A DNA stretch of 63,678 nucleotides, counting the filler, from Neoconidiobolus thromboides FSU 785 (lineage: Eukaryota; Fungi; Entomophthoromycota), in NCBI GenBank assembly GCA_025603075.1. It is 4 parts of 4 records of this genome, joined end to end, with 100 filler letters (N's around TTAATTAATTAA, not from the genome) between each part and the next. Parts side by side here need not be neighbours in the genome. Positions count along the whole stretch, not along the records: positions 1 to 31,813 come from MU626474.1; 3 more parts are not named here. One strand, written 5' to 3'. The notes below the pieces were generated by a model. It was not told where the DNA came from, did no database searches, and worked only from the letters and a program-made list of their open reading frames with translations. Shown here piece by piece: positions 19,466-31,676 of this stretch (position 1 is its first letter; every line of letters starts with the position of its first letter). The position numbers were made by a program, and so were the translations under genes.

Positions 19466-20084
19466 GAAATTTCAAATATAGAATTATAGTAAACTACTAA
19501 TTCACTCTCTATTTTATCCTTATGTGTAATATCTGTAAGTTATTGTAGTTGATTAAACGCTTTGATAGCTTCAAAAATTAATTTTTGAATTAAACATATT
19601 TTAAAAAAATAGACAATAGGCTTATTCTTAAAGGTGACAGACAGGATTTACATAAAATCTAAAAAAAGGAGAAAATGATACGGCGAAATAAAGCTACTTA
19701 TACTATAAAAATAGCACTGTCTGTTGTATAAGTGATATTATTTTTGAAGATAACATAAATTTATTAATAAAGGGTGCAGGATTTTATTTAAAGAAAGAAT
19801 AAAATAGGATATGAAGTTCTAAATTATTTCAAGAAATTTAGACGGAAATTTTATTTTGCTTTGATTTTTCATTACGGAATCTCAGAGCAAATAATCAAGC
19901 TTAAAAGTAAATTATCAAACAGTAGCATAAAACATATACTTATTTTTAATCAAGTTAACGGAGGAATAAAAACTCAATTCCGCTATATGAAAAAAAGGGA
20001 GGTGAGAAAAAGCAGGAAAAAGTATATAAAAAGAAAATAGGAAAGGCATAAAATCGCAAAAAACTGTAAATTATATATTTAAAA

Positions 20085-20363
20085 ATGAAATTCAATACTG
20101 TTGCTTTAGTTGCTCTCCTTTCATTGACTACCGTTGAGTCTTTTTCTTTATTTAACAAAGCTAAATCTATGTTTAAACGTGGCCCAAGCAAAGATAAATG
20201 TTTACGTGCCAATAACCAAAGCTATGGTTGGGCTCAAGTTTCTTCTGGTAACTATCCACCATGCTGGATTGAAAACGGTGGTAAATATGATTGCTATGAT
20301 TACGTTGATAAGAATGCTAAGAAATGTAACAACTGGGGTGGTATGTTCGATCGTACAAAATAA
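20085..20363 (+). CDS. Small secreted cysteine-rich protein, one module (paralog 1)
   Basis: Signal peptide, pro-segment FSLFNKAKSMFKR, module PPCWIENGGKYDCY...C..W.GMFD; TATA (TATATAAAAAG) upstream; biased codons. Confidence 0.85.
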   Translation: MKFNTVALVALLSLTTVESFSLFNKAKSMFKRGPSKDKCLRANNQSYGWAQVSSGNYPPCWIENGGKYDCYDYVDKNAKKCNNWGGMFDRTK

Positions 20364-20957
20364 ATATAAAATGTTATGCCTTGTTATTATGCTCACAATA
20401 AAAACACACTATTTTCAATGAACACTTTTGACGTTTTTTAATCTTAGTGATAAAAATGATGTTCTTATTCGAGTTTTTCTATTTATATTAATATTATAAA
20501 ATAACAAATGTTGAAAACAATCTTGTTGACTAAAAGATTTATTAATGAATGATATCATCTTATTAAAGTATCTTAATATAATATAAAAGCTTCTTATAAA
20601 CGTAATTTAAGGGTTCCTCATCTTTTAACTCTGAGATGAGCCGAATCTCTACTCAAGTAGTATCACTTATGATGGTTATTATCTGTATATACCTTTGTAT
20701 ATAAGGAAATTCTATTATAGAGAATTTAATTGATTTAAAAATAAAAAATGTGTTAAATTATTTCAATAAACTTTAGTTTAATCTTACATGTATTTTATTA
20801 CAAGTGTATAATTGTATCCAGCCGTGAGATCTTAGCTTGTAAATTCAATTGGTTCTAAAAAAGTAACCTCATTTACAAATTTATAAATTAAATTTTTTAC
20901 CTTTACTTTCTTGAACGAAAACCACTGATAATATTAAAATTACATTTCTTCAAAAAA

Positions 20958-22845
20958 ATGGGGCAAAGAGAAAAAAATAAGAGAAGAGGTTCAAGCAGAG
21001 AAAGAGGGGAAGATAAAAGGATAGATTTTGATTATTTAGATAAAGAAGACTATGGCAGCGTAGGGTTTCATTGGCATAAAAAAGATAAAGATTCTAAAAG
21101 AGAAGTGGATAGAGAAGAAGCAGAGGTAACATTAATAATAAATCTCGGATGATAAATTCTAACTTAGTAGATGGAATTAAAAAAACTAAAAATGCGGAGA
21201 GAACAGAGAGAAAGAGAGAGAGCAGTAAGAGAAGAAGAGAGGCTCCAGCAGCAGAGGCAAAGGGATTTGGAAACTTTAGGAGATTGGGAATCTAGAGAGA
21301 TTAAGTTTCATTTAGATCAATTAAATAAACGAGCAGAATTGAGGATTAATAATAATAGAGCAAAAGCAATCGATTATTTAGCTATTATAGTGCCCTTATT
21401 GAAAGAAGAGAAAATTAATGATGATATGTTTTCCGCATTAGATAAGGTTATGCCGCTAGAAATACCATATAAATTAATAGAAGAGATTGATACAGAAGAG
21501 TTAAGAGAATGTAAAAAAGACAGTCAAATTTATTTGGAATTAGAAGAAGAAAAGGAAGTAATAAATTACTGGAATAAAGTCAACTATCTAATAAATGAAA
21601 AGTTAATTAACGTTGATTATTTAAAAGAACGTATCCCTATTGAAGTATTAAACCAAATTGACAATATGATGAGAGACAAAACTTTGGAGCAACTGAATAA
21701 TTTAAAGGGTAAAATTGAACAAAAATTAAATTCCAAACTGCCCATTGATATTGATTATTGGGAATTAAATTTAAAAAGAGTCAAAATATGGAAAATAAAG
21801 GTAACATATAGTGTAGTATTTTATTATAAAAGTGTGACAATATTTGTATTTTAGAAAGAACTATACAGCACTCATAATAATGTTTTAAACAAATGGATTG
21901 ATATTATAAAATATAAACAGATTGAATTAGCACAAGAAAATATAAAATTGCTAAAAATGAAAATCGATAAGTTAAATTTAAAGGTAATATACCATCAATT
22001 TTAGTATTATTTAATAGCTTGTACATTTAGAACTCCAATCAAGAAGTAATTTACGATGAAGAGTTAATGGAACCTAAATTACTACCTTTGAATAGTAATG
22101 TTAAAACCGTTGATTATCAAGAAGATAGGTTGAAGTTGGTAATATTTAATATTTAGCATCTTATATTAGCATTTAATATTGCATGTAGTTAAAAAAGCGT
22201 AAAGAAATCTTGAAACAACTCAGTGATTATGGAATGATTAAAAAGAATGAAATAATTAAAGAAATAGAAAACCCTGTCAATATAGAAGAAGCTAAACAAT
22301 ATGCAACTAAGCTATTTAACGAGGAAAGAGAAGGTAAGATTAAAAGAGGAGAAGAGTTAGATGAGGATGAAGAAATCTTTTCGGCTGAAGCAAAATTGGA
22401 TTTTATTAGAGTAAATTATTAGCTACTTACATGTAATATAATAACGATTATGTTTTTATAGAATAGTGCTTCAGTAAATGGTGATGGTTTATTAAAAAAG
22501 CCTTTGTATTTTAATCGAGTCAATGTCGGCTATGAATGGAACAAATATAACCAGACACATTATGATTTAGATAATCCACCACCAAAAACAGTACAAGGAT
22601 ATAAATTTCATATTTATTATCCAGAATTAAAGAATTTCACTCCAACGTATGATTTAATTGACGACCCAATCTCGGAAGATACTCAAATTATTATATTTAA
22701 GGCTAAAGAACCATATAAAGATTTGGGTTTTAGAATTGTTAAAAAAGATTGGGAGCTATCTCACAAAAGAGGGTTTAAATCGGCCTTTATTAATAACACC
22801 CTTTATCTATATTTTTCATTTAAAAGATTACATTATCGTAGATAA
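20958..22845 (+). CDS. CACTIN: Cactin (spliceosome-associated protein), 6 exons
   Basis: Middle domain WESREIKFHLDQ..RAELRINNNRAKAIDYL, IDIDYWE, and C-terminal YFNRV..GYEWNKYNQTHYDLDNPPPKTVQGYKFHIYYPEL; canonical introns join the ORF-track pieces in frame. Confidence 0.95.
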
Positions 22846-22891
22846 ATAAAGTTTGAATGTTAAGTTTAAATAGTGTTTATTTTAAAAAAAT

Positions 22892-23338
22892 TTAAATTTC
22901 AATCATACCGCCCCATGGACATTTGCCTCCTGATTTATCATAACAGTCATATTTGCCACCGTTCTCTTGCCAGCATTTAGGACAGCTTTCTTTGGCAGGA
23001 TAACACAAAGTACCCATATTACCTCTGTTACAGCTATCAGCAGGTGGTTTGTTACCACCATTACCTTGCTTTGTGCGATCAAACATACCATTCCAGTTAT
23101 CGCATTGAGTACCTGATTTGTAGTCATAGCAATCATATTTACCACCGTTTTCAATCCAGCATGGTGGATATTTGCCAGAAGAAACTTGAGCCCAACCATA
23201 GCTTTGGTTATTAGCAATCAAACATTTGCTATTGTCAGCTGCACGGGTAAAGACGTGTTTGATTTTGTTAATCAAACTGAAACTTTCAATGCTTCCAGCG
23301 GCTAATAAGGTTAATCCAACAATGCTGTTCAATTTCAT
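22892..23338 (-). CDS. Small secreted cysteine-rich protein, two modules (paralog 2)
   Basis: Signal peptide, pro-segment FSLINKIKHVFTR, two CW..NGGKYDCY..C..W.GM modules (4 + 6 Cys). Confidence 0.88.
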   Translation of the reverse strand: MKLNSIVGLTLLAAGSIESFSLINKIKHVFTRAADNSKCLIANNQSYGWAQVSSGKYPPCWIENGGKYDCYDYKSGTQCDNWNGMFDRTKQGNGGNKPPADSCNRGNMGTLCYPAKESCPKCWQENGGKYDCYDKSGGKCPWGGMIEI

Positions 23339-24448
23339 TTTATCTGTTAATTTACAAAAAATGTTCTTTACAAATATTTACAATAAATGTTTTTTTAATG
23401 ATTTTAGACATGGATTTTGTTTCTTTATATATTCTTCATTTTATCAAATACGTCAAATCTTTCATTTCTCTCCTTCAAAATTTAATCCGCGTCTCACCTA
23501 CTTTTTCACTGCTTTATTTTATAATTATTCTTTAAATCTCGGAGTGCGATTTTAATGATCTTTTAATTTATTCCGTGCTTTTATTCAAATAGTGTAGGTG
23601 TAAATTGGACTTTTTTTTGTTTTCTTGGCCCCCGATTGGTTGATTCTGCAATTATTTGAGTCCTATTTATAATTTTGATAGTTTATACATGTCCAATACA
23701 ATAATTACTCCTTTTAAACATTTTTGATGATATTGTCAGATACAGATAAATTTCTCTTATTATAACTTTGCTTATAATTACATATATGTTACTATTGATA
23801 TTAATTATATATATCATATATACAAATCTATTAAATAATAGAGTTACTAAGCTAAATGTTGAATTTTTAAAACTTGTAATTTATAGCTGTTAATCCGAAA
23901 TCCAGGATAATAATTTTTTTCTAAAAATAAAATAAAATGATCAATTTGAGTGCACTATATGCCGTTAAAATTGTAAAGAGCATTATACAAATTCTAAACT
24001 AAGTTAAAATAATATTTGGATTTCATTAGGCGTCTCAATAAATAAATAGCTGCTATTAAAATGAGCTTTTTAATCATACAATGTGATATACACTTAAAAA
24101 AGATTTATTGAACACAAAATAAATATTAGTTAAGTAGGTTAATAGCCTATTAAAAATAGCAAATATAATAAAGATTTGTATTTGTCCCACCATAAAGTTT
24201 ATAACAAAATGTAAACTTAATTGATTTTTTTTAGATGGGTTGTTAAAACAAGAAGATAGGTTGTTGCTTTTGGCTTATTATAACAATATATCCATTTTAA
24301 TGTATAAAATAGTAAAATGAGCCATCAGTTATACCAAATATTTTTAAGCAGTCTATAAATTTTTTAAACATTTTTATATATATCTATAAATCTATTGGCT
24401 ATTTTATTTTTGACAGTTTATAAATTAGAAACACTATATTAGAATACT

Positions 24449-24553
24449 ATATGAGGATGTATTTTTTCGTTTAAGAATTTTATTAACAATCTTTCCACTC
24501 AAATAGTACTCAAAAATGGAAAAAGTAATGAAAACAAAAAAACATCCTCATAT
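24449..24553 (+). mobile_element. MITE-like family copy
   Basis: Family core and termini. Confidence 0.8.
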
Positions 24554-24894
24554 TAATAAACTAATAGTATTAAAAAGAATATTCATAGCCATGTTGTATA
24601 CTAAAAGCATCTGGCTATAATAGCGATTTGTTTTTAGCATATATTTTATCTTATATCCAATATTCAAAGTAGCAAACACTTGAAATTGTTTATGTAAATT
24701 ATAAAATAATATAAAGTATTATGTTTTTTTCAATAATTTTAAGATAAAATTTAAATAAAATAATCTTTATAAAAATTATATGCAACTCTATATATTTTAA
24801 ATAGAAACCCAGTAATCTCCAAATAGGGAATATTATACCAAAGGTAAGAAGGTATTGGAGAAAAGTGAAGTTAAATAAAAGTACGTTAAACTAG

Positions 24895-27644
24895 TTAAAA
24901 AGGCTGAAGTAGATGTCCATACTTTTCCGATCTAGCTCTATCCCGAAGCTTTGAATTAGCATTATGCTTTTGTTTTTTAGAGTTAACTAAATTAAACCTT
25001 CTATTACAAACTCTATGAACCCTTCGAATAAACCCATTTTGACTCTTTTTATCACTTTTTTTATTATTGCTATTATTGTATCCTTTCCAATGATTTCCAC
25101 CATTATTTTTAACATTCTTATTATATCGAGAATTTCCCTTTTTACTTGTTTCTCGTTTATTAAGCTTAAGTAATTGAATTGAAAACGGTTTATTATCTAA
25201 TAAAAGCTCATCACAATAGCTTTGTCCATACTCATCAACTGTAGTAAAAAATCGAACTCTGTTTTTGCTCGTTTTTATCCCACTTTTATTTTTTGTATTG
25301 CGATTCTTATTGTTTCCTTTTAATATGGATTTCACTACTTCTTGTTTACTTCTTACTTTTTCTTTTTCTTTTTCTTTTTCTTTTACTTCTTCAAGTGGAG
25401 GTACTGGTTCAGTTTCTACTGCTTTGGGTATAATTGGCGATGCTCCTAATATTGCTGGCATGAAAAAAGATGGTGGAAGTGAAGAATCATTAATGTTAAG
25501 AGTCATTGCTTTGATACCATCAGAAATTTTAGTAATATCTGGTGAAGTGGCTCTAGAAGAGATAGGTGTATTTGAAGACATTGGAGTTGAGTTGGGTGTA
25601 TGTGAAACTGTATATCTGCGAATTGTCTTTCCATAATAACTTGATGTATTTCTTGGCAAGTTTAATGATGACATATCAAACTGATTATTGTTTAAGTGGT
25701 GTCGAAATGCAGTAACTGGAAATCGATCCCATCTAGCCAATGCTTCTGCCGAACGTGACTCTAGTCCGTTTCTATGTGGCTTTACTTCTGGCGATTTACT
25801 AGCTAAATCAATATCCAAAACTTCATCAATAGCTATTTGACTACATTTGTCTCCTTCAGACATTGTATCAAAGCTCATCAATTTAGTAATTTGATCGGTA
25901 GAAAATTTAGATAAGGCTATTAAATCCTGATCAACAAGCTCAGGTGGTGGTGAGTTAGGTAAAGAAGGATTAGCTGAAACTGGGCATGATCTAAAAGAAT
26001 CATACACTAATTTGGAGTCTAACGCGGACCATCCAGTAGATATACAATCAGGTAATTGGCCAGGATTATGACGGGATGTAAGATGTCTACTTTGAAGTGG
26101 AATGCTGGACAATGGCTTAAAAGTGGATGAATTTGGGAGATTGATGTTAGACTCAGCACTCAATAAAGAATGGTTTTCTTCCATATAAATTTTGTTTTTA
26201 TGTAATTGATCTGCAAAGAGTAAATTGCTTTTGGCATTTCCTTTAAACACAGGTGGGAGGATTGAGTTGCCCATTTCTTCATTTACCTCAGGGCTGCTTT
26301 CGATTCCATCTAGCTCAGTTGGGGACTCAAGTGCAACATTTGAGTCAATATCAAAGGTGAGTGTGGGACATTTACGAGGTGGTTCATCAAGTAGATCTGA
26401 TAAATATACTGGTCTATGTTGATACCATGGATGATTTGGTGCCAAAAAGGAGTCGCCTTCTTCTTGTTCTTGAATCGAGTAATTACCATTACCCTCTTTA
26501 GTCGCATCATCTTCTAAATCGGAACCAATAGAATCAAAGTCCTCCAATTGTGAATCCCAACTATGATCTCCAGCCATAACTTTTTGTATCAAATAATCTT
26601 CTTCTAACTGTCTTATCTTTAGATTATCTTCTGACTCCAATTCGTCAAAAGATTCAAATCCAATTTCACTTAATTGATGGTGTGAAGATGAGCTTTTAAA
26701 TGTAGTATTAATGTCATGACTAATATCGCTATTGTAATAGCAACCTTCGTTGTCAGAACCCTCAATTGAGAGATCCTCCATATCTGAGATATTTTCATTC
26801 AAAATACTGTGTTCAATTATGATAGGCGTGGATTCAATATCAGAATCAGCTGATCGCATTGAATCAATATCACTAATTATATCTTCCTTTTCGGATACTG
26901 GAGAAAGGGTAGTTCCAACTACTTGAATGCTATTGGAATTCCTTCTGTAACTTTTCGGTCCCGGAGTGGAATAAATTGGGGAGGAAGATAGTGAACTTCT
27001 TCTACGCTGATTTGTTTTTGGTACTCTTGAGCTCATAACTTTACTTTTGCCTCCTCTTCCATGGGATCTTCCTCTCTTAGTGGGTGTGGTTTCAGCGCTA
27101 GAGCTCTTCTTTCTATTACCTTTAGAAGATACTAGGTTGACTGAAGAGCCAATGGATGAAATAGAAGAACTTCTTGTTATCCTGTAACTAGATTTAAAAT
27201 CATTCTCTGGTTTATTTTGATACCCGAATATTGGCGAAGTCAAAGGGCTAGTGCTAACATCTATATAGTTATTGAATGAATCTGAATTCGAATCTACGCT
27301 TTGTTTTCTATGTTGAGTTTCTAGATATTTTTGTACCCAGATGTCTTTGCCTCCAGTTCTCGGTCTATTTGTTGAAAGAGGTTGATTTATATTTATTGAT
27401 TCATCATCTGAATCATCTATATCTATATGATAATTATGATTGTTTTCATCTACATCTATTTCACTATCTTCCTGGCTAGATTCTATTAAATTTATATTTA
27501 GTGAATATTTATATAATTAAAATTAAATTTATAAAAAATCGGTTAATGGCATTTTTGATTAAAATCCAACTTACCAGGTACACAAGTGCATGTAGAATCA
27601 CAAACGGGACATATATCATCGAGATCTTCTTCGGTTCTATGCAT
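24895..27644 (-). CDS. Large (~885 aa) Ser/acidic, probably disordered protein with an N-terminal Cys cluster; 2 exons
   Basis: The frame stays open upstream of the track's TTG to an acceptor at 27482. Exon 1 (27575-27644) encodes MHRTEEDLDDICPVCDSTCTCVP and joins in phase across a 92-nt GTAAGT...AATAG intron. Confidence 0.75.
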
Positions 27645-28405
27645 TGTTTCTAGGTTTTATAACTATGAAGTTGAAGCAATAGCCCTACTCTTGGAAATAG
27701 AATTCAAGACAATTCTAAAAATTTGGATTCTACCAAAATTAAGTCAAGTAAGTCTTTAACATTGATTGGATGACTAAACTTCCAATAATTCGAGCTTAGA
27801 TAAGTTACTATTGGCTCTAGTAAGAATTTCAAGGGAATTTCAAGTTGATTGGCAAAGGCCAAAATCTCCATTTGATTTTTATCTTTGTAAAATCCCTTGG
27901 TCATTTCCAATTATTGGCTTATGACTTCTAATTTTAGCCTATTAAATTCCAGTTTGAAAATATTAACTTTAAACTAATTGATATTATAAGATACTATATA
28001 ACCACTATTTTTAATAATCAACATTAAGTTTAATTAAATCCAAAAATGAGAGGCCATTTTATATTGTTTGTTATCGTTATTTACCAATATTTTTATAGCA
28101 TGGCTTCAATAACTAATATTATTCATTTTTATAGTATAACAATAATATGCATTTATGACATTATATTCTTCACTTTTATTTTTATTAACTGCTTAGTTAA
28201 TTCGATAAGAGTGACCTGTTAATTTCAAGTTTTTAATAACTTGAATTATTTAAATTTTTAAAATTAAACTATACGTACATATTTAGTATTGAGTATGTAT
28301 AAGTGCGATCCTTTTTGCTGTTTATCATATTAAATGTTTACTATAAATTAGAATTTGAAATATTTCAAAACATTTAAATTTTAAATGTAGGAAATAAGCT
28401 TAATT

Positions 28406-28508
28406 ATTGGGGATGTTTTTTTATTTCATCATTTTTCCATTTTTTAAGTGTTATTTGAGCAAAAAGATTGTAAATAGAATTCTTAAACAAAAATACATCT
28501 CTCCATAT
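28406..28508 (-). mobile_element. MITE-like family copy
   Basis: Family core and termini. Confidence 0.75.
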
Positions 28509-28566
28509 CTTTTTAAAGCTCAAGAATAGAGCTGCATAATTTAGGGATGTTTTTTTACCAATTATG

Positions 28567-28792
28567 CCCTTTTGCTATTTTTGAATTTAGAAATTGATTA
28601 ACTGGTATACTGTTCAAACTTAATGTTATGATAGTTAACTGTTCATTTTGAAATAAAAATTAAACTAATAAGTCTCAAATCAGCATAATGAAACAAATAA
28701 GTGGTTATAAAATTCATCACTTACTAACACACATTAAGTTTGAACAGTATACTAGTTAGTCAATTTCTAAATTTTAAAATAATAAAAAAGGG
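28567..28792. mobile_element. Second non-autonomous TIR element (~230 bp, ~60-bp imperfect TIRs, ends CCCTTTT...AAAAGGG)
   Basis: AATTTAGAAATTGATTAACTGGTATACTGTTCAAACTTAATGT recurs reverse-complemented at about 28731-28775. Confidence 0.6.
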
Positions 28793-29010
28793 TAATAGGT
28801 AAAAGACATTCCAATTTACTTTCAATTTTTATGTTTTTAAAGTAAATTTATTTTGTTGATTCAGTTTTTATTTAATTAGCTTTTATTTAACTCAGTTTTA
28901 TCTCTTGCTAAATAATTTATATTATCCTCTATGGAAAAAGCAACAATTTACATTTTAAAATATTTATAAGCTACTATTCGAATTTAGTTTGTTTGAAGAG
29001 TATGTTTAAG

Positions 29011-29115
29011 ATATGGGTATATATTTTTGTGTTTAACAATTTTGTTAACAATTTTTCCGCTCAAATAGCGCTTGAAAAATAGAGAAAGTAATGAAGTCAA
29101 AAAACGCCTCCATAT
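29011..29115 (+). mobile_element. MITE-like family copy
   Basis: Family core and termini. Confidence 0.75.
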
Positions 29116-29346
29116 ATACTATTATATTCATAGTTTTTATAACAAAAAGCTCTTCATCGTTAATGCTTTACAATATAAAACTTACTTATATATAAACTGA
29201 GACAACTTTATAGATAAATCTAATTGAAACTCAACATCTATTCAATATTTATTTTTACAAAAATAAGTGAATAAATTTAAAAGCAATGTAAATAACCGAA
29301 ATAAAGTCACATCAAAGAAGGAATTAAATAAATAGAACTTAGATAT

Positions 29347-30761
29347 CTAAGAAATATACACTTTTTTGATAGAATCAAAGCTAAACGATTCTTTAGTTTC
29401 TGGACAAACGAATGAATGATTGATTTCTTTTTGTTCATCAATTGCCTAGATTGTATTTAATATATAATAATATGCTCATATATATAATTACCTTTTTTGA
29501 ATAAACTTTACCGTTTGGTAATACCATTGGAATGTTATGCTCATCCATAAGCGTATTAGTAATGTTACATTTTAATGTTGAATTTGTAAAATGTGCAAAT
29601 GGAAGGGTTTCGGCTATTTTTCCAAAGGTATCTACTTGACAACATGGACAATCTGGGTTTTGAGTTTTGGTATCAAGGCAATATGGTGTCTTTAAAGATG
29701 CAAGGCCAGCTTTCAAAGAAATGATTAAAGGTGGTTGCTCAGGTAAGGAATGTAAATTATAACAATCATTACGGAATTCTTTAATCAAATCGTTCCATCT
29801 ATCTATAGAATAGATAGCTTTATAAGGGTAACACTCCGTATCATTTGGGAAAGCTAAGATACCAAAATATTGTTCAACCTCCTCTTGTTTTTCATTTAAA
29901 TAAGGGGTCATATACTTTTTCAAATATGCCAAAGCATCCATATGTTTTTGAGCTCTAGCTAATTCAACAAATTCTTGAAGTCTTAGATGAAATTCAAAAG
30001 ATGACTTGAATCATTTTAATTTTAGTCTGATTTTAATAAATCCGATTACCTCTAGTTTTTGTAGTCCTTTTTTATTTTCATTACACCAAGCTAAAGCCGC
30101 TCTACAACTATGTTTCTTCAAAGCTTCCTCTACTTTTAAAATTTGTTCAAACAAATCAAAGTCGGCAATTTTCTAATAACATTTAAATTATCTTTTAGTG
30201 AATTAATTATATGCTTACATTTAAATCAGTATTGCTTGAAAATTCTCTCGCGGTCTTAATGAAACCATTTCTTAATAGATAATCTAACACCACTCTATTT
30301 AATCTTTTTAATGACCAACCAGAAAACTTTGGATCATTCATATTATTAATAGCTCCAAGTTCGTTTATTGCTTGGGTTCTTTCATACAAACCGGATATCA
30401 ACTCCTTTTCTTTATTATGAGAAGAATTTATCTAAAACAATTTAATAAAAACAACTTCAAATACCTTAGATATTACTTTATCTTTTAACTCGTTTATATA
30501 GTTAATAATCTTATCGTATTTTTCTACTTTCTCTTGGGTAGATAATTTTTGATCTGTTTGAATTTCTTTTAATCTATTAAAATTATCTTTAATGTTTTGG
30601 GTTCTAGTTTTTACTAATCTGAATTGCGCGTCTGTATTCTTTCTCATTAGTTCAAAAGGGGCCTACTACAATTAAATTCAACTTATTTACATTTATTAAA
30701 ATATTACCATAATAAACGCCTTCTCCATTTGTAAAAATTGTTGGTGATCCAATGTATTCAT
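29347..30761 (-). CDS. FYV10: GID/CTLH complex subunit Fyv10/Gid9 (MAEA ortholog), multi-exon
   Basis: LisH-like RLNRVVLDYLLRNGF.KTA, CTLH AL.WC.EN...L....S..EF.LRLQEF.EL.R, CRA region and C-terminal degenerate RING NPDCPCC...C.IT...MDEHN.PMVLPNG.VYS...CP.T. Confidence 0.9.
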
Positions 30762-31223
30762 TTTTTTTTTGTTTTGTAATAGGAATTAAATTAAGAAAAA
30801 TTATTGAAAACTATTTTTGTGCACTTTATTCTCTATTCATGCTATGCATTAATCTACCAATAAATAAAATTATATTTTAGATTTAACTAACAAACTTTTA
30901 AAATTAAAGCTGTAGTTTAATTCAATATAAGCAACAGATTTAACAAATTGCTATGTTTAAGAATAAAAAGCTAAAAGCTTATTAAGTGTAAAGAAAGACA
31001 GTATGAAACATACATTCATTAGAGAGAACTTAATTTAGTATATAGTGCTCAAATAATAAACCAGATTAACAATATTCTTTTTAAAGTAGCAACTTGATTA
31101 ATTACTTTAATGTTTTATTAAAAACACTAGATGTATTAAAGCGTAAAGTAATAAAAGTTATATTTGATTTACATTTTTATTTTATTTTACAAAATTAACA
31201 AGTTAGAAAGCAACATAAACAAA

Positions 31224-31676
31224 TTATTGAGAGATATCAATCATTCCACCCCATGGACATTTACCACTAGATTTAACATAACAGTCATATTTGTTACCAT
31301 TCTTTACCCAACAATCTGGGCATTTTTCTTTTTTAGTATTACATAAAGTACCCATGTTACCATGATCACAAGTTTCAGCTGGTGGACCACCATGTTGTTG
31401 ATTATGAATATCAAACATACCAGCCCAATTATCACATTTTTTGGTATTTTTATCAGCATATTCATAACAATCAAATTTACCACCATTTTCAATCCAACAT
31501 GGTGGTACGTTAGCATCATTGATATTAGCCCATCCATAAGCTGAGTTATTAGCTTTCAAGCATTTATCTTTAGGAGCTTCACGTTTGAAGACATGCTTTA
31601 AAGCATTTTTGAAGGAGAAAGCTTCAGCACAGGAAGCAGCAATGAGGATAGCAGAGATAGCAATAGTAGATTTCAT
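31224..31676 (-). CDS. Small secreted cysteine-rich protein, two modules (paralog 3)
   Basis: Signal peptide, pro-segment FSFKNALKHVFKR, same two-module layout as 22892-23338. Confidence 0.88.
   Translation of the reverse strand: MKSTIAISAILIAASCAEAFSFKNALKHVFKREAPKDKCLKANNSAYGWANINDANVPPCWIENGGKFDCYEYADKNTKKCDNWAGMFDIHNQQHGGPPAETCDHGNMGTLCNTKKEKCPDCWVKNGNKYDCYVKSSGKCPWGGMIDISQ

Follow-up and report, generated by a model that had tools for sequence, protein, structure and literature searches.

Small extracellular modules of 35–60 amino acids (aa), held by 2–4 disulfides and carrying conserved aromatic residues, are represented by the carbohydrate-binding module (CBM) families CBM1, CBM14 (peritrophin-A/Avr4), CBM18 (hevein) and CBM19 and by WSC, which occur solo, in tandem or appended to enzymes, and whose stand-alone forms can protect the wall. 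A further module, X278, is listed in CAZy as unclassified and lies behind a linker in canonical AA11 lytic polysaccharide monooxygenases (LPMOs), with N. crassa CWR-1, AoAA11, AfAA11B and some GH18 chitinases among its carriers; it is presumed to bind chitin, and its function is without experimental proof (PMC9550227, PMC8453653, PMC8615602). The CPW-WPC domain of apicomplexan surface proteins (PF09717) spans about 60 aa with six cysteines, several aromatics and tandem repeats, and its function is unknown. Here, a module of comparable build is described from three paralogous genes lying between positions 20085 and 31676 of a window from Neoconidiobolus thromboides FSU 785 (GCA_025603075.1), the window being the whole stretch of 63,678 nucleotides that was analysed, with a G+C content of about 27%. 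The reading favoured here, at a probability of roughly 55%, is that the module represents a new CBM-like family whose ligand is a wall polysaccharide.

The present module resembles X278 in being small, mainly beta, and Cys- and aromatic-containing, and in lying C-terminal to an LPMO-type domain via a flexible linker. The 18 X278 modules extracted from 80 AA11 loci, which were collected from metagenome contigs with a 4MAH stretch as query, display the motif C-x3-4-G-x-W-N-C-x-G-G-x-S-F-Q-x-C-A-S-G-x-W-S...A-A-G-T-x-C, with 4 Cys and no CPxCW, unlike the present module. Identity of the two was rejected, as the module profile gave no match at E ≤ 1 in the 80 AA11 loci, hhalign returned a probability of 0.6% over 6 columns and the reciprocal hmmsearch stayed below 7 bits; since the profile search was empty and the hhalign probability so low, the two modules are analogues by position and not homologues. 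The CBM and WSC families differ from the present module in their Cys spacing, and neither a Pfam match at E ≤ 10 nor a significant fold neighbour joins them to it. The 'CPxxW' motif of CPW-WPC is formally fitted by the CP-x-C-W of the module, and the CPW_WPC model was tried and rejected: one of 23 modules matched it at 17.3 bits against a cut-off of 23 (profile positions 7–34 of 59, E 0.0087), the match recurred in none of 79 family members, and the Pfam model was empty in the fungus's own genome.

Wider searches were likewise negative. Pfam assigned no family to the module when searched at E ≤ 10 with the three proteins and 23 modules, nor with 79 relatives at E ≤ 5, and hmmscan gave no match of the module to CBM_1, CBM_14, Chitin_bind_1, CBM_19, LysM, WSC, CFEM or hydrophobins. 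The sequence profile search of the PDB returned nothing beyond an 18-residue chance match to arenavirus GP2, while the module model found nothing significant among PDB structures by Foldseek (best E 3.9) or among 48,161 PDB chains by VIA-align (best Z 2.4), and no ESM Atlas entry with a TM score (structural similarity) at or above 0.5. A protein-atlas search with the 148-aa protein of the second gene gave no usable match, and no published description of the module was found in the literature on DUF7492 (a partner domain treated below), the CPPCW motif and entomophthoralean Cys-rich secreted proteins. The original prediction that no named family applies is thus upheld, including by the AlphaFold and Foldseek check that it had proposed: the domain family is undescribed and without detectable relatives in fold, but familiar in its functional kind.

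The three genes and the predicted module

The three paralogous open reading frames (ORFs) exist as originally predicted, encoding precursors of 92, 148 and 150 aa, and genes 2 and 3 align with gene 1 over the full length at 54–67% identity. The features are listed below.

20085–20363, plus strand: gene 1, ORF of a 92-aa precursor with a single 4-Cys module
20085–20141, plus strand: gene 1, predicted signal peptide, aa 1–19 (ending ...TVES before FS), with a hydrophobic core and small residues at -3/-1
20142–20180, plus strand: gene 1, 13-aa basic segment FSLFNKAKSMFKR, putative Kex2-processed propeptide, from the alignment
20187–20354, plus strand: gene 1, module (4 Cys), profile match of 75.1 bits, E 1e-19
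20058–20422, plus strand: gene 1, mRNA; contig starts near 20058, non-templated poly(A) after 20422
22892–23338, minus strand: gene 2, ORF of a 148-aa precursor with a 4-Cys and then a 6-Cys module
23282–23338, minus strand: gene 2, predicted signal peptide, aa 1–19, read from the sequence
23243–23281, minus strand: gene 2, conserved 13-aa segment FSLINKIKHVFTR, from the alignment
23075–23236, minus strand: gene 2, module 1 (4 Cys), 81.4 bits, E 1.2e-21
22895–23044, minus strand: gene 2, module 2 (6 Cys), 74.6 bits; the sequence used for folding, with an AlphaFold predicted local distance difference test score (pLDDT) of 92.8
22860–23396, minus strand: gene 2, mRNA; poly(A) added at 22860 (T-runs in four of four runs), 5' end near 23396
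31224–31676, minus strand: gene 3, ORF of a 150-aa precursor with a 4-Cys and then a 6-Cys module
31620–31676, minus strand: gene 3, predicted signal peptide, aa 1–19, read from the sequence
31581–31619, minus strand: gene 3, conserved 13-aa segment FSFKNALKHVFKR, from the alignment
31404–31574, minus strand: gene 3, module 1 (4 Cys), 74.3 bits
31230–31382, minus strand: gene 3, module 2 (6 Cys), 71.7 bits
31089–31813, unstranded: block of about 725 bp with gene 3; an exact inverted copy opens contig C317 of the same assembly

The predicted signal peptide and the 13-aa segment were found in all three genes, in agreement with the original prediction. The 19-aa hydrophobic leaders end in V-E-S, I-E-S or A-E-A and fit the -3/-1 signal-peptide rule, and would route the precursors to the secretory pathway. 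The segment that follows, with the consensus F-S-[LF]-x-N-x-x-K-x-x-F-[KT]-R, is kept in genes 1–3 and in a paralog on contig C288; it ends in KR in two of the three genes and in TR in the remaining one, and at this KR/TR end the basic stretch may be cut off. The motif C..(C)..(C)PxCW..[YFW]xC[YF]..C.W.GM.D occurs in five copies over genes 1–3, the N-terminal type having 4 Cys and the C-terminal type 6, with a Gly/Pro linker between the two in genes 2 and 3. When all six frames of the whole genome were scanned with the module profile, the five modules scored 72–81 bits (E 1e-19 to 1e-22), far above chance level, so that the number and both types of module given in the original prediction stand. 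Codon bias, also predicted, is only modest, with an effective number of codons of 29–40 in genes 1–3 against 41–45 in their neighbours and a preference for GGT and GCT. Pairwise ratios of nonsynonymous to synonymous substitution rates (dN/dS) among the three paralogs and the fourth copy on C288 range from 0.08 to 0.27, and on these values the paralogs are evidently under purifying selection.

An alignment of 23 modules, all from this genome (A2), is invariant at four cysteines, C1, C4, C5 and C6, and at two residues around C4, the Pro two positions ahead of it and the Trp next behind it. Over 166 distinct modules, the Trp after C4 is present in 80%, Trp or Phe after C6 in 61%, an aromatic two residues before C5 in 72% and an aromatic directly after C5 in 74%. 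The optional cysteines behave as pairs: C2 and C3 are both present in 53 modules, both absent in 93 and discordant in 20, and C0 and C7, at the two module ends, are both present in 83, both absent in 40 and discordant in 5 (all counts uncorrected for relatedness), while the two pairs vary independently of one another. As each optional pair is gained or lost as a unit, these patterns argue for C2–C3 and C0–C7 disulfides added to a four-Cys core. The core would be held by two invariant disulfides among C1, C4, C5 and C6, whichever their exact pairing, and the subtypes would carry an internal C2–C3 disulfide and/or a C0–C7 clasp joining the module ends. AlphaFold, run on a 51-residue module with the 23-module alignment, gave a pLDDT of 92.8 and four short strands in two hairpins, and each module is accordingly modelled as a compact two-hairpin beta structure.

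The CPxC motif could also suggest a zinc-ribbon-like metal-binding domain in place of a disulfide domain, and LIM, ribosomal L31, Spt4 and the DnaJ Cys-rich domain did appear as weak, non-significant neighbours in structure and Pfam searches. All of these zinc-ribbon matches lie far below significance, however; nearly all complete members carry signal peptides, whereas zinc ribbons are usually intracellular; the 4-Cys subtype lacks the first Cys of CPxC, which is lost together with C2; and there is no second CxxC knuckle, so that the four invariant ligands in two knuckles are not seen. A metal-binding domain is for these reasons extremely improbable.

Family members, domain partners and the candidate ligand

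The genome searched is a 24.6-Mb assembly of 799 contigs, in which the piece of the window with the three genes is contig C217, and the six-frame search returned no fewer than 51 matches to the module, distributed over about 30 genes. Further small secreted family proteins lie on C96, C107, C303 and C336; a three-module protein on C317; a Thr-rich 725-aa protein with four modules on C5; and three proteins, 529, 765 and 1110 aa long, contain module arrays, the longest of them with up to 16 scored repeats. In three proteins a single module stands between a signal peptide and a stalk rich in Ser, Thr and Asn that runs into a hydrophobic C-terminus, a GPI-like (glycosylphosphatidylinositol) layout that would be the usual look of an anchored wall protein; in another protein the module precedes a SUN domain (PF03856, 8e-65). 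Two other members, at C34:66625–66819 (P0003, 241 aa) and on C595 (P0026, 419 aa), have one module and then a C-terminal extension with one or two copies of a region of about 150 aa, which gave no Pfam match and whose conserved D-x-D-H-D-G-K-[VL]-D-E-L resembles a calcium-binding loop.

Outside this genome, 1.84 billion representative proteins were searched exhaustively with the profile, which returned 81 representatives at E ≤ 1e-3, far more than the word-based homolog searches (3 and 8 matches). Six of the 81 were discarded as spurious, being partial matches to RCC1-type or junk repeats (P0039, P0055, P0058, P0064, P0071 and P0072). The named members come from Entomophthora muscae, Conidiobolus coronatus, N. 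thromboides, Linnemannia elongata and L. gamsii and are all annotated 'hypothetical'; nearly all complete members have a signal peptide. The partner domains among the matches are DUF7492 (at least four), thaumatin (2.2e-7) and PAN, with the module always C-terminal to them behind a low-complexity Pro/Ala/Ser linker. The module is spread over Zoopagomycota, Mortierellomycota and early Pezizomycotina. In P0018 and P0046 (Logan), a common N-terminal domain of about 165 aa (...NCPKGSWQDT...KDAWTLCSVGNEGG...), without a Pfam match, precedes one or two modules of the 4-Cys type.

This range of architectures bears on a defensin-like antimicrobial peptide directed at competing microbes, a role in keeping with small, disulfide-rich, secreted and highly expressed proteins, of which those of genes 2 and 3 would measure about 12–13 kDa once processed. 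Yet, the putative propeptide apart, the mature proteins show no strongly cationic or amphipathic character, arrays of 1100 aa and enzyme fusions are unusual for defensins, and neither Foldseek nor VIA-align gave a fold match to defensins or knottins, which leaves this role very improbable.

The DUF7492 partner was followed in 58 proteins obtained by a homolog search with one DUF7492-module protein, of which 20 end in the module and 38 do not carry it, the position of the module behind a linker being comparable to that of X278 by analogy only. Module-bearing DUF7492 proteins were observed in Morchella importuna, Tuber indicum, T. magnatum, Sphaerosporella brunnea, Rhizina undulata, Tirmania nivea and Terfezia boudieri. 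In complete DUF7492 proteins the signal peptide is mostly followed at once by H-S-W (by HTW in P0098); against the PDB, the DUF7492 profile drew LPMO structures and nothing else, with 4MAH (AA11) at E 4.5e-4 and, besides it, two other AA11 chains and four of AA9; and the language-model neighbours of DUF7492 include LPMO clusters. These weak profile matches suggest that DUF7492 is LPMO-like. Fold prediction by AlphaFold failed for P0077, a protein with DUF7492 and the module (4-row alignment, pLDDT 41). In the genome of N. thromboides itself, the module was not found in the three DUF7492 genes and LPMO_10 had no match; one of these genes (C53:70406–71011, minus strand) has a different Cys-rich tail (HECKQGTYDNNLYDCVNQILCEKGNKICNENQCYNTNQFQCC...), unrelated to the module. 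In the DUF7492 proteins P0126, P0129, P0130, P0142 and P0151–P0154, from Dothideomycetes and metagenomes, the module is replaced by a Pro/Ala-rich linker and a short conserved motif, V-T-E-[WV]-x-D-V-[WY]-[TE]-T-..., which may be another small C-terminal element of the LPMO-like DUF7492 family.

The module would thus be a portable extracellular binding module of CBM-like character because it forms a discrete predicted fold, occurs in solo, tandem and stalked forms and lies at the linker ends of wall- or polysaccharide-acting domains, and also because one enzyme family has members with and without it and aromatics make up most of its conserved positions. By CAZy-type standards, a module is a contiguous sequence with a discrete fold, which the model supports (pLDDT 92.8, with boundaries drawn from the repeats and the C0–C7 clasp), and it lies within carbohydrate-active enzymes, here beside SUN (8e-65), thaumatin (2.2e-7) and LPMO-like DUF7492. 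The Trp after C4, the aromatics at positions -2 and +1 of C5 and the Trp or Phe after C6 would form a binding face for wall beta-glucan or chitin; in other proteins the same module would tether enzymes or serve as a binding head on a GPI-anchored stalk, and the stand-alone one- and two-module proteins of the locus would be soluble and abundant, forming a coat on the wall or cross-linking it. The glycan binding guessed at in the original prediction thereby becomes plausible, through the SUN, thaumatin, PAN and LPMO-like fusions and the GPI-type wall-protein layouts.

Several points weigh against this reading. Domain fusion marks a portable extracellular unit and says nothing on its ligand, and the ligand is not fixed because the partners point to different polymers: SUN and thaumatin point to beta-1,3-glucan and AA11-like LPMOs to chitin. 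The LPMO nature of DUF7492 itself depends on weak profile matches, and the contig depth from which transcript abundance is judged measures expression poorly, with paralogs cross-mapping. Tandem arrays and stalk proteins would suit a protein-binding or purely structural module equally well, and the module may instead be a disulfide-stabilised repeat of wall glycoproteins or adhesins, in a role like that of EGF-like or CFEM domains, which binds no glycan and makes protein–protein contacts or acts as a rigid spacer; the small stand-alone proteins would then be wall or matrix components. Arrays of 6–16 modules in proteins of 500–1100 aa, Thr-rich mucin-like proteins with four modules, GPI-type stalk proteins and very high mRNA abundance, as expected of structural proteins, all speak for such a repeat. 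The linker-end position beside SUN, thaumatin and LPMO-like domains, however, is usual for substrate targeting, and mostly aromatic conserved positions are typical of sugar-binding faces, so that a structural or protein-binding repeat is a serious though unlikely alternative to the CBM-like module.

Transcripts, neighbouring genes and implications

RNA contigs from four public runs of two studies were mapped to 19900–23500, which holds genes 1 and 2 and, between them, a cactin gene (20944–22779, plus strand; Cactin_mid 2.5e-38 and CactinC_cactus 1.1e-46 in Pfam) with five introns of 45–54 nt, all GT..AG and backed by spliced contigs. Because the cactin contigs lack these five introns, the runs represent RNA, and as the contigs of genes 1 and 2 show no joint at all, both genes are intronless, which confirms for these two what had been predicted for the locus. 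Comparison with the genome sequence showed that the A-runs which the contigs bear behind 20422 (gene 1) are non-templated, as are the T-runs ahead of 22860 (gene 2), and AATAAA lies about 20 nt upstream of the gene 1 poly(A) site. The summed contig depth of genes 1 and 2 reached 1e4–1e5 against 20–490 for cactin in all four runs, depth being a poor measure of expression, and the mRNAs of both genes are very abundant, among the most abundant transcripts of the mapped runs. One of the four runs is identical to the window; the other three differ at many synonymous-looking cactin sites and so derive from another strain or a sister species, and genes 1 and 2 are abundant in these divergent runs as well. 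In the contigs of three runs, the 5' ends of genes 1 and 2 (20057–20062 and 23390–23396) carry 11–19 extra A's in the mRNA sense, at places where no more than an A6 or A7 tract is encoded; these could be a non-templated poly(A) leader made by reiterative initiation, or chimeras from assembly at extreme depth.

At 29438–30647 (minus strand), intron-split LisH and CTLH/CRA exons mark a MAEA/Fyv10-like subunit of the GID complex, and both this gene and cactin, which flank the family genes, are by annotation housekeeping genes. A 782-aa open frame at 24895–27243 (minus strand), Ser-rich, of low complexity and without a Pfam match, sits in a local G+C peak of 0.33–0.37 against about 0.27 elsewhere. 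The block with gene 3 is 100% identical to C317:1–725 over the first ~725 bases and random beyond, and C303:193–342 and C303:18919–19068 are identical inverted copies of another family member at both contig ends; it seems that family genes recently duplicated in inverted orientation cause breaks in the assembly.

In the original prediction, the three genes were the best candidate in the window for an undescribed effector system, in a probable arthropod-pathogenic lineage. An arthropod-specific system is not supported, nor is a novelty confined to three genes: at least 51 modules are present in the genome and others in Linnemannia, which are soil saprotrophs, and in truffles and morels. The reading of a host-directed effector or toxin, secreted in insect infection to mask the fungal wall or act on insect cells, is weakened because the module occurs in saprotrophs and mycorrhizal ascomycetes, the paralogs are under purifying selection and the neighbours are housekeeping genes. 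The proteins are small and Cys-rich with a signal peptide, their transcripts are among the most abundant of the mapped runs, the family is expanded in entomophthoralean fungi, and wall masking is compatible with glycan binding. The non-pathogens Linnemannia, Tuber, Morchella and Terfezia carry the module too, though, the dN/dS of 0.08–0.27 gives no sign of an arms race, and no toxin-family similarity was found in Pfam or by the PDB sequence profile, all of which makes an effector improbable. A narrower idea, also unlikely, is that the module is a new carbohydrate-binding fold belonging to early-diverging fungi and Pezizomycetes, and that in entomophthoralean fungi the extremely abundant stand-alone proteins with one or two modules form a coat on the fungus's own chitin/beta-glucan wall and shield it from insect pattern-recognition proteins and hydrolases, in parallel to LysM and Avr4 and on an unrelated scaffold.

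The secretomes of entomophthoralean fungi are largely unannotated, and among the orthologous groups of small secreted proteins that zygomycete species share, about two-thirds had no Pfam match (PMC9391592). If binding is true, the module would define a new CBM family with its own fold and would offer a handle on the LPMO-like DUF7492 proteins of truffles and morels, on the SUN and thaumatin-like wall enzymes of zygomycetes, on a set of GPI-type wall proteins and on some of the top-abundance transcripts of entomophthoralean fungi. For insect pathology it provides a testable wall-masking candidate, and for annotation it gathers dozens of 'hypothetical proteins' per genome into one definable domain family.

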